A DNA stretch of 32,000 nucleotides, taken from the NCBI RefSeq assembly GCF_000400465.1, contig NW_008806282.1:360001-392000 (forward strand), read 5' to 3'. Positions 26,617 through 32,000 of this stretch are shown piece by piece; positions within the stretch are counted from its first letter, which is position 1, and the number at the start of each line of letters is the position of its first letter. The notes below the pieces were generated by a model. It had not been told where the DNA came from and ran no database searches. It saw only the letters and a program-made list of their open reading frames with translations. Origin of the DNA: Wallemia ichthyophaga EXF-994 (taxonomy: Eukaryota; Fungi; Basidiomycota). The translations under genes and the position numbers were made by a program.

Positions 26617-27788
26617 TTAATTTATCGATATGTCTTTAAATCCAATTACATGTTTCAGTATATCGCTCAGCGCGACGATACCTACGAGTGCGCCTTTCCT
26701 CCTGATTTGCCCATTAGGCAGCGTCTTATCCTCATCTTCGACCATCACCAAGCGATGAACCCTCCTCTTGGCGATGAGTGAAAAGACATTCGCCAGTGTC
26801 TCCTTTGGTGAGCAAGTGATGACACCGGGGAACTCGGCAGATCTCTGCGCTAACGCCGATGAGATTGTTAAATCGAGTGACTGATAGCTGCCTAGCCTGA
26901 CTAGCGTAATAACATCCACAGTCTCATAAAGATTAATCACTGCACCCTCCTCGTCGACGATGGGTACTGCAGAGATACCCTTGGCGGAAAACTGGTGAAC
27001 GACGTCAAAGACAGTAGTATCCATGGTGGCTACTGCTAATGGTTCAAGTGAAGTATCACTATTAGACGCGTATGTGCCTATATTCAACTCCAGTAGTGTT
27101 TTCTGTAATCCAAGTGTTTCCTTGCAATTCATGGCTATAAATTTGAGCACTCTGTACTGAGTAAGCACCGAGAGGACGACCTCAACATCCGTTCTATCGT
27201 CATGATCAATTAGGGGAAGTCTCCGGGCATGGGATGTCATTAGAATGTGACACGCTTCGAGTAGAGGACGCATCGGATGTATGGAGTGAAGAGGAGGAGG
27301 CAAAACTTCTATAGCGGTTTCGATATCTTGAATAGTCAGCCAGGCTAATGCAACAAGTCGAAACTCACCTCTGAGGTTACCTAACGTCAGCTGCTCGACA
27401 TCGTCAGCCGCGCCCTCGTAAGAGCTGGTAGTAGCATAGTAGTATTGCATCAAGTGTACTAGATCTGAAATAGTCAACATTCCAGCGAACTTGCTTTCAA
27501 CGGATGACCAAAGCGGGGCGGAGACTACGCCTGAGAGGGTATCAACAGGGGAACACTATAAGCACCCAAACACCACGCACCATTCTGAACCAAAGCATTC
27601 AAAGCCTTAATAACTTGTAGCCGCGTATCGAAAACAATCATTTTCGATGAAACGGGTAAGATTGATAAACAGTCCTTTGATTGTAGGAAAGTGCGTATAG
27701 CCTCAATAGATTTATCATGATCAACAGGCGTCCGCTGTACTGTATTCCTACGCGGTCTGCCTTGAATTGGAATAGCGGGTGTACTCAT
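26617..27788 (-). CDS. SNF4: AMPK/Snf1 gamma subunit (CBS domains)
   Basis: LPVSSKMIVFDT.L..KALNAL.QNG|VVSAPLWSS..FAGMLTISD, HPMRPL.EAC, LTQYRVLKFIA.NC, GISAVPIV and RRVHRLV. Includes an in-frame 42-nt intron at 27368-27327. Confidence 0.93.
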
Positions 27789-27865
27789 CAATGATGACGA
27801 TACGAGAGCAAGGTATTTGTGAAGAATGAGATTTATTTGAGTAACAAATGTATTTATAATCAATT

Positions 27866-28586
27866 TTAGACTGATTCTTTGGGTTTGTTAGTGGATAAAG
27901 CCATCAAGACATTAAAAACTCACGCTTAATGAGGTTGTTAAGCTTGTTTACCTTGCTAGCAACAGACAAGTCAACAGTCTTCTCACCAAACTCAACGACG
28001 AGCCCGCCAAGGAGCGCTGGGTTCACTTTGCTGACAAACTTAATCTTCTTTCCTTCTGCAGCGATTGATGAGTTTTTAAGTGTAGCTTCAAGACGTGATT
28101 GGAGCTTGGAATCGAGCTCTTGAGCTGACTCAACAACAACCTCTACATCGCCATTGTGGGCGCTGATGAGCTTCTCAAACTCTTCAACGACCTTTGAGGT
28201 TGAAGCGAGTCTACCATTCTCTGAGAGAGTAGACAGGAGGTTCTTGGTGATTTCAGACTTGGCACCAGAGAACTTGAGAGCCTCTTCAATGCCTTGTACA
28301 CGTGCATCGTTGGAGAGTGTTGGGTTGGTAATGAGGTCCAACAACTTGTCGTTCTTTGGAATCGAAGCTTTCAATCCGCTCAATTCTGTGGCAACTTGAG
28401 TGAGCGACTTTGGTGACTCCTTCAATGCCGCTGTGTACGCTGCAGTTGCGTACTTTCCTGGAAGCGAGTAGAGGGTAATTGGTGGCTAAATTTTATTAGA
28501 AAAGCCACAAAACGTTACCAAATACTCACGGAAACCTTTGCTTGAGTTGCGTAGCCTCTAACGCTGTTGAAAGATCTATTCATCAT
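27866..28586 (-). CDS. ATP5: Mitochondrial ATP synthase OSCP subunit
   Basis: Presequence MMNRSFNSVRGYA; intron 28529-28486; PPITLYSLPGKYATA, NLLSTLSENGRL, VNPALLGGLVVEFGEKTVDLSV; final intron ending at 27877, last exon QSV*. Confidence 0.95.
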
Positions 28587-29037
28587 GGTGGTTATGGTGC
28601 AGAGACGAGATATCCACAAAGAATCTTAATGGACTTGTGATCCACTCTATCACACTCACAAACCACTCACAAACTCTTTCATCCTACTTTAATCTTTTTT
28701 ACGACTCTTCTGTGTCGCTTCTGCGATGAGCTCCGAGATTGATCCATAGGGCAATCCAACTTGGAATTGACAAGTTTGATTCTTTAGTCTTTAATTTCTT
28801 CATCTTTGAAATATGTTCATCCTTTTCAAGCTGATTTTTATTTCCTGGCCACCGTCTCAACGCTATAGCTAAACATACTTGTATAATACAATGCAATAAA
28901 TTATTATTTAATAGGAACTTAAGAAACTTATTTACATCTTGACAGCAGAGATCAGCTAGTTACCGATCAAGCTTTGCTTTTCACCATTCAATCTTCTGAC
29001 TCATTTTTATACATTAATCTTTATTGTAATCATTAAT

Positions 29038-29408
29038 CTAGCATTCATCGCTGTCGTTGTATCCGCAATTCGTTGCTGCTACTTTACCTCCTTGCTTGCG
29101 ACACCATGCAGACAGACCAGCGATATCTCTGTCATTTCTTTCGAATCCGCGGTATGTCAGACGACAATAGTCACAGTTACAGCCGAACATATTACAACTG
29201 TGGCAGCTATGCCATGCGCAGGAGTTGTTTGGTACACCGCTTTGAATTCCTAGGTAATGTTAGCAAAATGAATGTCATTGAAAGACTTGTTCTTACCTGA
29301 AATGAGCTTGCCATTTGCATCTTTGCATCGATAGTCGCATCTGCCTTTGTTTTCAGCCTGGACAGCGAGAAAGATTGATGAAATGACGATAAGCTTCGAA
29401 AATATCAT
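29038..29408 (-). CDS. Small secreted cysteine-rich protein, array copy A (107 aa, 11 Cys)
   Basis: Exons 29408-29297 and 29249-29038, 47-nt phase-1 intron (gtaaga..gctaac..ctag). MIFSKLIVISSIFLAVQA/ENKGRCDYRCKDANGKLISGIQSGVPNNSCAWHSCHSCNMFGCNCDYCRLTYRGFERNDRDIAGLSAWCRKQGGKVAATNCGYNDSDEC*. Signal peptide judged by eye. Confidence 0.88.
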
Positions 29409-29836
29409 CTTGATTGTGCTTAAATAAGCCTCAATTTCAGTTCCTTGTATTTATGTCGTTGCCTCGGCACAGGTCATCACATGTGAATGAGAAATGAATG
29501 GAGTTTCAGAACATCAAACTGAGACATAAAGGCGCCAAAAGTTCGCAGTAGCGAGCCTGAAAAACATTCTTTTCTAAGAAAAAAAATATTTGTTGACCAT
29601 TAATTTCGGCCATCGATGTTAACTTCTTTCGCAGTCAAAATTTATAACTTTCCAACCAAGCCAAAGTTACCGATGACCAGCATATTCCAAGTCGTTTGAA
29701 TGCTTTCGATTGTAATTTGGTGAAGGAAAAATGTCTTCAGACCATATCTTAACGTTTTGTGTGGCGAGAATAATAGATTCAAATTTGCACATGAATGTCA
29801 TCGTTTGATTGTCATAAAGAGTTTTACAGTTATCCA

Positions 29837-30189
29837 GAATTCTTTACTAAAACAACTATCGCAGTATGTTTCTTTTATTTCACCTTCTCGTCTGTAGCAC
29901 CAGCTATCAATTTTACTAACGGGCTTATCGCTAGGGTAATTGAAAGTCGGCAATCGTCGCAGTTATTACCTAATATATTACAAATGTGGCAGCTATTCCA
30001 CTAACACCTATCGTCGTATATGGCGCTTTGAATGCCTATATATACTTTCAGTATGTTGAAGGTTTTCAAATTGTCCACTATTACCTGTAATGTGGGGGCC
30101 ATTTGAACCCATTCACCAATATTTGCACCTCTCTGCATAATAATTATGGAGATGTACAATGCAGATTTTGCGATGGTATGTTTCGTACC
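29837..30189 (-). pseudogene. Decayed copy of the small secreted Cys-rich gene family
   Basis: Same phase-1 intron position (30084-30036). The ATG is missing after the conserved ACTCGATCAAG context. TGA replaces Cys2 (30115-30113), there is an in-frame TAG (30003-30001) and a frameshift near 29943, and the terminal Cys is lost. Residual motifs: GIQSA..C*WNSCHICNILGNNCDDCRL and SWCYRREG..TYC. Confidence 0.85.
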
Positions 30190-30614
30190 CTTGATCGAGT
30201 ACTTCGTAATGCTCAGTCACCATCCTTCCTGGTGTCTCTGAATACTTTACAGTTTATATCACTGAAGCAGCATTAACAGTGAGAGTGGTTAAGGCAATGG
30301 CAATTAGTTTTGAAAAGATTTTGTTTAAAGATCTACAAGGAAAAACTATCATTTATAGCTCTGACACCTGTCATTGCGTCGATACGTCGTCACGGTAGAC
30401 AAAGCTGAGACAGGTTGTATAATTCAGGTTGTAGCATTAATGCGCTCGAAAAGCACTATTTCTACGGCATTTATTCACTTTCAGCAAACGAGGTCAAATT
30501 CTGACAGCAGAGATCATTTAGTTACCAATCAAGCTATCTTCTTATTCCTGAGACGAATACCTATTCATCGCTTTTGTTTGTTTTTACACATTACTCCTCA
30601 TTAAGACTATTCCT

Positions 30615-31002
30615 CTAGCAGTATTGGTTATCTATCCTGGTAGAGCAATTTTCAATTTCCCATTCCCCTCCTTGATGGTTGCACCACTCTTTAAAACCTT
30701 CAATATCTCTTTGGTTTCTGTTAGGCCCGCTTTCTGTCAGACGGCAGAAGTCACAGTTGTAGCCGAATATGTTGCAACTGTGACAAGCATGCGAGGAGCA
30801 GTAGCTGTCTGGTATACCGTTTTGAACTCCTAGATAATTGTAAGAAGATCAAAACTTCGAAGGACTGTTTCTTACCTGTGATTCGCGTTTCAAATTTATC
30901 ACGGCTATAGCACATGAAGGAGCATTGTGTATTTCTATGACGATTGCGAGCGTTTACTGCGAGAAACACTGAGAAAATAGCGACAAGCTTCGAAAACAAC
31001 AT
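30615..31002 (-). CDS. Small secreted cysteine-rich protein, array copy B (113 aa, 10 Cys)
   Basis: Exons 31002-30876 and 30829-30615, 46-nt phase-1 intron. MLFSKLVAIFSVFLAVNA/RNRHRNTQCSFMCYSRDKFETRITGVQNGIPDSYCSSHACHSCNIFGYNCDFCRLTESGPNRNQRDIEGFKEWCNHQGGEWEIENCSTRIDNQYC*. TATAAA at 31043-31038. Confidence 0.9.
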
Positions 31003-31701
31003 CTTGATCGAGTGAAAAAAGGCCATATTCACAACTATTTATACTTCTGTCATACGTCATTACCTCGGCACAGGCTCTCTCACAAGTGTATGACAATTGA
31101 ATGAACTTACGAAATGTCAGACTGAAACAGGAAAATCGCAATAGTTCTGCAGTACCGAGCCTAAGTTTTTGCCCTCAACTTTCGGTAAACGATGTCAAGA
31201 TCTTTGACAGCATATTAATAATTTGCCAACAAAGCTAAATTCACCGATGATTCGCTTATTTCAGGTTGTTCGAATGCTTTTGGCTGTGATGTTTCTAGAC
31301 CATGTCTTAACTTTTTGCGTGGCTAACATATTATATGCAAAGTCCCAGGTATATGTTCTGATCTCATTGTCATAGTCATTGTATAATACGTCATTGATGA
31401 AGCTTTAAATTGAGTTAAAGTTTCTGTGATTAAGTCCGATAGAATTATGGACACTATACTAAAAATGCAGCTCGTCATTACGGTAACTAGAGCTGAATCG
31501 TGTTGTACGATGTTGAAGCAAGAGCTTCAGGTGCAGCATTCACTATAAATACTTTCGAAATACACTATCTACGCTACAATCAATCCACTTTTGGCCAACG
31601 AGGTCAAATGTTTGATATTTAAGATTAATGATTTAGTTCGTATTTATGGACAAATTTATTTACTCCTTGTTCTATTATTCTCCAATTGTAGCATCCTTTA
31701 T

Positions 31702-32000
31702 TTAACATTCTCTGCTGTCATTGTATCCGCAATTGTGTTCTGCTATTCTGCCTCCTTTATTTTGACACCAATTAGTCACACGTGTAATATCTATTGAATT
31801 CTTATTTCCGTTAGAAGTGTCGCTCCCGGGTGCATAGTCCTCGAAGCGGCAGTACGTGCAGGCTGATGCGACAAAGTTACAACCGTGGCAGCTATACCAT
31901 GCGCAACTATCTTCCGGAACAGGACTTTGAATTCCTGGCTCTTATTATCAGAAAATATTAGTTTATATTTCTCATCATTACCCTTTATAACTTTGCCAGT
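31702..32000 (-). CDS. Small secreted cysteine-rich protein, array copy C (5' end outside the window)
   Basis: Partial exon 1 ..TGKVIKG (32000-31982), intron 31981-31935, exon 2 31934-31702 open to TAA: IQSPVPEDSCAWYSCHGCNFVASACTYCRFEDYAPGSDTSNGNKNSIDITRVTNWCQNKGGRIAEHNCGYNDSREC*. Confidence 0.85.

Follow-up and report, generated by a model that had tools for sequence, protein, structure and literature searches.

An unannotated tandem array in Wallemia ichthyophaga predicted to encode a rare family of secreted proteins that are small and rich in cysteine

We analysed a stretch of 32,000 nucleotides (the window) of Wallemia ichthyophaga EXF-994, scaffold KE007232.1 (GCA_000400465.1), at approximately 360,001-392,000, and focused on a tandem array of small two-exon genes on its minus strand, which are predicted to encode secreted cysteine-rich proteins. 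Gene models were obtained by reading the minus strand directly and were then built by script. Four units were located within the window, namely copies A and B, copy D, whose exon 1 lay mostly outside, and a pseudogene, C. The end of the window was extended using Logan contig L029, which came from another strain (99% identical), was anchored on the open reading frame (ORF) of OSCP, and reached 6.4 kb further. In L029, copy D was complete (115 amino acids, aa), and a fifth copy, E (109 aa), was found past the window end. Beyond E, this contig contained no more copies of the family, and the Exo84 and Tim17 genes came next. A six-frame scan of window positions 1-29000 with a hidden Markov model (HMM) also gave no additional copy. 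The array consisted of five units, four intact (A, B, D, and E) and one pseudogene (C), arranged in the order E-D-B-C-A over about 4.3 kb, with the ATP5/OSCP gene on one side and the Exo84 gene on the other. It started just past the OSCP gene, where the GC content dropped to 39-40%. The reference locus (L004) was 100% identical to window positions 28500-31106.

The following features were all on the minus strand, and the coordinates are those of the window unless L029 is named. Exon 2 of copy A, including the TAG stop, was located at 29038-29249 and encoded the mature domain from (G)IQSG to the terminal DEC, which matched the family HMM with an E-value of 2e-26. It was separated from exon 1 by an intron of 47 nucleotides (nt) at 29250-29296 (GTAAGA...GCTAAC...TAG), which lay in phase 1 in a Gly codon. 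Exon 1 at 29297-29408 carried the ATG, the predicted signal peptide MIFSKLIVISSIFLAVQA, and then ENKGRCDYRCKDANGKLIS with the first base of the Gly codon. The predicted product of copy A was 107 aa long. In copy B, exon 2 with its TAG stop was at 30615-30829, a 46-nt GT..AG intron in phase 1 in the Gly codon was at 30830-30875, and exon 1 with the ATG and the predicted signal peptide MLFSKLVAIFSVFLAVNA was at 30876-31002, giving a product of 113 aa. In copy D, which was complete in L029, exon 2 with its TAA stop was at 31702-31934, and the phase-1 intron of 47 nt (GTAATG...CTAAT...CAG) was at 31935-31981. The final 19 nt of its exon 1 occupied 31982-32000 and the other 96 nt fell past the window end, the entire exon being at L029 6344-6458. 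Copy E was located at L029 5089-5463. Pseudogene C extended over about 29830-30358 and was broken in both strains examined. Its ATG was replaced, a stop followed the signal-peptide remnant, about 150 nt were inserted, and the remnant of exon 2 contained an in-frame TAG and frameshifts. It kept a recognisable GT..AG intron remnant at 30084-30036, and the signal-peptide remnant began at about 30322.

An earlier note on this DNA had described a hidden array of at least four homologous two-exon units on the minus strand. Four such units were indeed present in the window, one of them being the pseudogene, and the word hidden was also appropriate. The longest ORFs in the array region were only 50-93 aa, and no gene was annotated there in any of six NCBI assemblies. 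An ORF-style call of 101 aa at L029 6344-6649 began at the true ATG of copy D, crossed the unspliced 47-nt intron, and continued through exon 2 in the wrong frame. This misreading of D showed how ORF callers misrepresented these genes.

The four intact copies shared a common gene and protein architecture. In each, a GT..AG intron of 45-47 nt in phase 1 split the Gly codon in the sequence G|IQ or G|VQ. Each predicted protein began with a hydrophobic N-terminus of 18 residues, which ended in V-x-A and was followed by a charged residue, as judged by eye and by rule. The spacing of the cysteines was 3, 21, 4, 2, 6, 2, 20, 11, and 8 residues in B, 3, 20, 4, 2, 6, 2, 27, 11, and 7 in D, and 3, 19, 4, 2, 6, 2, 22, 11, and 7 in E. 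Copy A had an 11th cysteine, and its spacing was 3, 19, 4, 2, 4, 1, 2, 20, 11, and 7. The C-terminal residue was Cys in all four. The intron in the same Gly codon, the signal peptide, and the ten-cysteine pattern C-x3-C-x19-21-C-x4-C-x2-C-x6-C-x2-C-x20-27-C-x11-C-x7-8-C of the earlier note were therefore confirmed for A, B, D, and E, with one extra cysteine in A. The isoelectric points (pI) of the mature proteins lay between 5.1, the value for D (exon 2 only), and 8.1. Each copy contained one or two N-x-S/T sequons, which may be glycosylated.

Several observations bore on whether the genes are real and constrained. Unit B was aligned with unit A over 720 nt with an E-value of 3e-34. The spliced junction LISG|IQSG of copy A matched the continuous LISGIQNG of P0001, an intronless homologue obtained in the database searches described below, and the remaining homologues were likewise continuous at this point. 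The ATG, the signal peptide, the GT..AG splice sites, ten cysteines, and the stop were kept in A, B, D, and E despite near-saturated synonymous sites. For the paralog pairs, the Nei-Gojobori method gave nonsynonymous divergence (dN) of 0.28-0.56, synonymous divergence (dS) of 0.6 to more than 3, and dN/dS of 0.15-0.51. Polymorphism was compared among seven strains for copies A and B only. The ORFs were intact in all seven. The exons of A and B (666 nt) contained six single-nucleotide polymorphisms (SNPs), four synonymous and two giving V16A and V43A in A, and only one SNP fell in exon 2 of A. Pseudogene C (542 nt) contained 17 SNPs and two indel columns, and the intergenic DNA (1144 nt) contained 21 SNPs. 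The exons had 3.5-fold fewer SNPs per site than pseudogene C within the same 2.4 kb (Fisher test, p = 0.005), and fewer than all non-coding sequence (p = 0.028). The difference between the exons and intergenic DNA alone was not significant in the seven strains (p = 0.16), and the same population contrast on four strains was not significant either (p = 0.08-0.12). The match at the splice junction, the retained features, and the contrast between exons and pseudogene argued for function. These comparisons indicated that the intact copies are under purifying selection.

The earlier note had called the family diversifying, and this was not borne out. The dN/dS values were 0.15-0.51 with dS near saturation, the exons were less polymorphic than the pseudogene, and four of the six exon SNPs were synonymous. 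Diversification at single sites could still have occurred, because dS was saturated and only four sequences were compared. Two further observations were made on the variability of the locus. The polymorphism of the array region (window 28600-31106 compared with L001-L003, L024, L025, and L029) was above the SNP density of 0.13-0.40% published for the whole genome. The reference and the strain of SRR25393947 differed at 32 positions over about 2.4 kb (1.3%), including indels, mostly in pseudogene C and the spacers.

The same data were used to weigh the view that the array consists of silent relics, that is, decaying or never-expressed duplicates without present function. Unit C was clearly dead and indel-polymorphic, no annotation pipeline called A, B, D, or E, and these four copies are known from sequence alone. 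However, all four have held on to start, signal peptide, intron, ten cysteines, and stop in spite of the synonymous divergence described above, and the depletion of SNPs in the exons relative to pseudogene C, together with the predominance of synonymous changes, was not what such relics would give. The TATA-like boxes and 350 nt of upstream sequence were also kept between A and B. We consider it very improbable that the intact copies are relics.

The flanking sequences recorded how the array was formed. The protein identity between paralogs was 34-62%, with 50% for A-B and 57% for D-E. The upstream regions of A (29409-29816) and B (31003-31374) were homologous, with 74% identity over 348 nt (z = 62), and the identity was 67% in the intron and 71% in the 3' flank. 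For D-E, the upstream identity was 69-73%. No alignable flanks were found in the other pairs. The claim that the non-coding flanks remain alignable although the proteins are diverged was thus correct for A-B and D-E and did not extend to the remaining pairs. The four-point condition on protein distances favoured ((A,B),(D,E)) and placed B at the end of a long branch. These alignments and distances showed that the array arose through old tandem duplications with the topology ((A,B),(D,E)). A chimeric origin of promoter and coding sequence was also considered, as the A protein was nearest to E and the A flanks were like those of B. It was rejected, as the four-point condition favoured ((A,B),(D,E)).

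Candidate control elements were found in the conserved flanks. TATA-like boxes were located at 29446-29455 (A), 31035-31044 (B), and 30349-30358 (C). In A and B, the box sat about 40 nt 5' of the ATG, and an identical 12-mer, CCTGTGCCGAGG, was located just 5' of the box (29462-29473 in A and 31063-31074 in B). TGACG-like (CRE/ATF-like) motifs followed in B and in pseudogene C. This stretch may be a common regulatory site. On the downstream side, a 3' element of 34 nt at 28940-28973 (copy A) was 91% identical to its counterpart at 30502-30535 (copy B). In the spacer between E and D, past the window end, the short direct repeat TTCTCATTAAC occurred three times at L029 5838-5872.

Database searches were performed to identify relatives of the family. 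In Pfam, copies A, B, and D gave zero matches at E <= 10, including hydrophobin, KP4, HCE2, and HMA. A search of PDB sequences at E <= 10, with protein A and with a 14-sequence profile, gave no relative. Its sole match, ribosomal protein eS12 with an E-value of 0.85, was attributed to chance. A word-indexed search of 5.8 billion proteins gave nothing with A alone, and only five relatives with a 10-sequence profile. A profile of the three window copies was run with HMMER exhaustively against 1.84 billion representative proteins, and this search returned nine matches, seven of which were credible (P0001, P0002, P0004, P0005, P0007, P0008, and P0009), all unnamed and none from a well-characterised family. 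P0015 was added later. The other two, P0003 (a subtilase of 1697 aa) and P0006 (Batrachochytrium, 1518 aa), were spurious multi-stretch matches in long proteins. The nine proteins of the profile search gave nothing relevant in Pfam at E <= 1, and weak matches to Euplotes pheromone and DUF2538 were far under the cut-offs of these families.

The relatives, including P0015, were 98-161 aa long, and all of them came without a name from assemblies in SRA (Logan), ENA, or JGI. Their common core consisted of a signal peptide, G-I-Q ... C-N-[ILMF]-[FLV]-G-x-N-C-x-[YFWH]-C ... W-C-x-x-x-G-G, and nearly all ended in Cys. In the 10- and 14-sequence alignments, C-N-x-x-G-x-N-C-x-x-C, the downstream W-C, and the C-terminal Cys formed invariant or nearly invariant columns. 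The family HMM matched A, B, and D at 1e-22 to 1e-26. As this HMM was built with these three copies, the independent support came from P0001, a separate protein of 101 aa with the full ten-cysteine pattern, which was found with an E-value of 6e-17 among the 1.84 billion proteins. It was 49% identical to A, and its cluster mate P0010 was 51% identical. Unlike the Wallemia copies, these relatives were all intronless at the Gly codon. The full ten-cysteine pattern was found in P0001 only, whereas the other relatives had eight cysteines or C-terminal extensions. The GC content of their sources spanned 17% to 52%, and none had a functional annotation.

Other sources were also searched. A motif search with tblastn confirmed no relative in IMG/VR viral contigs, in the genomes of 185,579 species of bacteria and archaea, or in JGI metagenomes, and tblastn of P0001 gave no match in PLSDB plasmids or INPHARED phages. 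With these scans empty, no viral, plasmid, or prokaryotic source was found. A literature search on secreted or cysteine-rich proteins of Wallemia gave nothing on the family. Judged from these searches, the family is new and rare, without an entry in the searched family and structure libraries or in the papers found, yet not restricted to Wallemia. The description as an unrecognised family was thus right with regard to Pfam and PDB sequences, and has to be qualified by a handful of unnamed homologues from metagenome and SRA assemblies. As a sequence family it is new, and it falls within a familiar class, the fungal small secreted cysteine-rich proteins.

Some of these relatives were encoded on unusual contigs. 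The unit with P0001 (L010-L015) was 1357 bp long with 18% GC, and its contig closed on itself with a 25-nt overlap. In at least seven samples it recurred in circularly permuted versions that differed from one another, and it also encoded an N-terminal fragment, 77 aa long, of a pyroglutamyl peptidase of bacterial type. P0007 was the sole credible ORF on a contig of 1028 bp and 17% GC (L032), which was self-closing with a 30-nt overlap. The P0001 and P0007 contigs may represent either small circular molecules or tandem units in high copy number, from a very AT-rich organism. A third organism of about 36% GC had at least four intronless paralogs, namely P0008, an uncalled neighbour, P0009, and P0015. 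P0008 and the uncalled copy 1 kb upstream formed a tandem pair in L006 (5044-5343 and 6115-6522). L006, L009, and L017 come from one sample set (ERR1594...). The tandem pair and the paralogs indicated that tandem multiplication was not peculiar to Wallemia. The family might be a mobile, killer-protein-like gene, in which case the Wallemia array could derive from a horizontally acquired small AT-rich element, followed by intron gain and tandem duplication. We regard this scenario as improbable. If it were true, it would be a new vehicle for secreted toxin-like genes, besides the double-stranded RNA killer viruses.

Structure prediction was performed to look for a fold. AlphaFold2 with three sequences gave a mean confidence (pLDDT) of 50.7, and with 14 sequences the pLDDT was 66.9 and the predicted template-modelling score (pTM) 0.59. 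In the 14-sequence model, strands spanned residues 5-12, 47-51, and 74-79, with a further short one at 17-18, and a single helix was clear, at 59-71. In a Foldseek search against the PDB, the best match was Zt-KP6-1 (6qpk), with an E-value of 0.98-1.7 and a Foldseek probability of 0.35, which was not significant. The template-modelling (TM) score with 6qpk was 0.49-0.50 when normalised to the query and 0.54-0.56 when normalised to the target. KP6 alpha (1kp6, 4gvb_A) gave TM scores of 0.40-0.47, and the nuclear magnetic resonance model of Zt-KP6-1 was also among the matches. The E-values across the Zt-KP6-1 and KP6 alpha matches were 0.98-4.6. RRM and HMA ferredoxin-like domains scored about the same as the KP6-fold matches. 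The poorer first model matched ferredoxin-like sandwiches (RRM, S6, VapD, and CutA), and KP6 alpha ranked 6th and 15th among its matches. Nothing significant was obtained in a BFVD fold search. These models suggested that the protein is probably a ferredoxin-like or KP6-like alpha+beta sandwich. The loose likeness to KP6 pointed out in the earlier note gained weak support, in that the best PDB fold match was Zt-KP6-1; with E-values of 0.98-4.6, TM scores of 0.40-0.56, and comparable RRM and HMA matches, it went no further.

The KP6 fold is a beta1-alpha1-beta2-beta3-alpha2-beta4 sandwich, in which two antiparallel helices pack on an antiparallel sheet of four strands through two right-handed split beta-alpha-beta crossovers, and members have been accepted at TM scores above 0.5 with visual inspection of the topology (PMC12382754). 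Because the TM score was right at this cut-off and the region of alpha1 was uncertain, membership in the KP6 fold was not assigned. The family was compared with killer proteins and effectors that have this fold, namely KP6 alpha/beta of the Ustilago maydis virus, Zt-KP6-1 of Zymoseptoria tritici, ECP28, BAS4, SIX5, and AvrLm6. As in these proteins, the predicted products are small, secreted, and disulfide-stabilised, with 80-100 residues in the mature form and a modelled alpha+beta sandwich. In contrast, the KP6 fold has two conserved disulfides that tie the helices to the sheet, whereas the Wallemia family has ten cysteines, and no sequence similarity to any solved member was found. The families with the KP6 fold have no mutual sequence similarity and are often multi-copy (PMC12382754). 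KP4 (PF09044) and HCE2/ECP2 are also secreted alpha/beta sandwiches, and UmV-KP4 also has five disulfides (PMC12382754). However, no KP4 or HCE2 Pfam match was obtained at E <= 10, no KP4 structure was among the Foldseek matches, and the KP4 profile (four conserved cysteines, three glycines, and two aromatic motifs) was not matched by A, B, or D.

The fold matches also brought up metal binding, which the earlier note had offered as an alternative. Here the proteins would be secreted metal binders, in which C-x4-C-H-x-C and C-x2-C on an HMA-like scaffold coordinate a metal ion such as Cu or Zn. HMA copper domains were among the weak Foldseek matches, with 1jww ranked second and 1fvq ranked 24th. 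HMA domains are likewise beta-alpha-beta-beta-alpha-beta ferredoxin-like sandwiches, with a CxxC near the first strand-helix junction. The C-H-x-C motif showed no variation among the four Wallemia copies and P0001. However, the HMA matches in Foldseek were not significant, no Pfam HMA match (PF00403) was obtained, and the family lacked MxCxxC. HMA proteins are cytosolic without a signal peptide. Cys 3, Cys 4, and the His were missing or displaced in P0002, P0004, P0005, P0007, P0008, P0009, and P0015. This meant that the putative metal site was not family-wide, and the suggestion of a metal site at the first C-x4-C-x2-C cysteines was not supported. For a protein with a signal peptide and an even number of cysteines, disulfides are expected in an oxidising compartment. 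The signal peptide and the even number of conserved cysteines favoured disulfides over metal, and we consider metal binding quite unlikely.

A role in the cell wall or at the surface was considered as well. The proteins could be functional analogues of hydrophobins, cerato-platanins, or HFS, which help to form or condition the thick wall and the cell clumps at high salt instead of targeting other organisms. Hydrophobins are expanded in Wallemia, those of W. ichthyophaga are salinity-regulated, and the remodelling of the cell wall has a central place in the biology of this fungus (PMC3849046). Surface activity occurs in several unrelated small secreted cysteine-rich families (PMC8596622). Purifying selection within the species and a near-neutral pI would also suit a housekeeping role outside the cell. 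However, neither of the known cysteine patterns was present. Hydrophobins (PF01185/PF06766) have eight cysteines arranged as C-CC-C-C-CC-C, whereas the spacings of the Wallemia copies contained no CC doublet and no Pfam profile was matched, in agreement with the earlier remark that the pattern lacks the CC doublets of hydrophobins. The HFS proteins have about 200 aa and eight cysteines in the pattern C-CXXXC-C-C-C-C-C, and are found in Pezizomycotina only (PMC8596622). The Wallemia copies are 107-115 aa long, have another cysteine pattern, and come from a basidiomycete. Direct reading of the mature sequences showed that they were polar and charged rather than amphipathic. In addition, the paralogs, at the identities given above, were more diverged than would be expected of interchangeable wall components. 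A wall or surface role is therefore a minor candidate, which we consider unlikely.

By analogy with known killer proteins, we favour, at roughly even confidence, the interpretation that the array encodes constrained, secreted, five-disulfide proteins with a KP6/ferredoxin-like fold, which act as killer-protein-like antagonists or antimicrobials against neighbouring microbes in the brine. The proteins would enter the endoplasmic reticulum co-translationally, and the 18-residue signal peptide would be cleaved after V-x-A. Five disulfides would then form, and a compact domain of 9-11 kDa would be exported and act extracellularly. Secretion was supported by the hydrophobic N-terminus with V-x-A in A, B, D, and E, by the even count of conserved cysteines, and by the Cys at the end of every intact copy. 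The exported protein might act on other cells as a killer-protein-like antagonist, a step proposed by analogy only, and the paralogs may differ in target or potency. Zt-KP6-1 and the KP6 family comprise secreted proteins of fungi, and they inhibit the growth of fungi (PMC12382754). Killer-like action was suggested because the nearest structural neighbours are such secreted growth inhibitors, because the tandem set has diverged, which is common among such families, and because nothing pointed to an enzymatic or intracellular role.

Several points weighed against this interpretation. The gene models of A, B, D, and E are predictions from the DNA sequence. No entry identical to spliced A was found in the protein collections, and no protein record was found for the 50-aa ORF of exon 2. 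About 200 novel transcripts per salinity were found in the Wallemia transcriptome, and these are absent from the text and the listed additional files (PMC3849046). There was no signal of positive selection in the dN/dS of the paralogs or in the SNPs of the seven strains. In the structural model, residues 26-43, which contain five cysteines and correspond to the position of KP6 helix 1, had a pLDDT below 50, and all fold matches of the predicted structures, including the best one, were non-significant. The pI range of 5.1-8.1 meant that the proteins were not strongly cationic, as many antimicrobial peptides are. Finally, competitors are thought to be scarce in the habitat of W. ichthyophaga (PMC3849046).

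The other genes of the window were housekeeping genes, encoding a kinase, Upf2, a RhoGEF, Yju2, Vps23, peroxidases, a CBS protein, and ATP5/OSCP. At window positions of about 26617-28590, five of the newer NCBI assemblies merged the CBS-domain gene and ATP5/OSCP into one model of 570 aa. In the reference, two genes of 359 and 209 aa were annotated in this region (L001 16382-18351 compared with L004 16378-17549 and 17627-18347). The fused model was probably an annotation artefact. Scans of 28000-32000 for Rfam families, tRNAs, and tandem repeats gave nothing beyond trivial repeats of 8-11 nt and one Rfam match to NEAT1_2. This match was located at 30598-30715 on the plus strand, opposite exon 2 of copy B. 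It was rejected as a chance match, scoring 23.5 bits where the gathering score is 60, with an E-value of 0.065.

The gene set of the extremely halophilic W. ichthyophaga is among the smallest in fungi, with 4884 predicted genes. For an organism with so few genes and with competitors considered rare, the maintenance of four secreted disulfide-rich proteins was an unexpected investment. The array also showed that short two-exon genes for secreted proteins escape standard annotation, even where the genome is compact and well studied. With a few members from organisms of 17-52% GC, two of which lie on very small AT-rich contigs that look circular, the family offers a clean case of how an orphan secreted family spreads. 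If the KP6-like fold were confirmed, the superfamily would be placed in the class Wallemiomycetes, and a five-disulfide variant would be added to it. Killer-like activity, if it exists, would make the products of the array antimicrobial proteins that function in near-saturated brine, with implications for protein stability and for antagonism among microbes of hypersaline environments.

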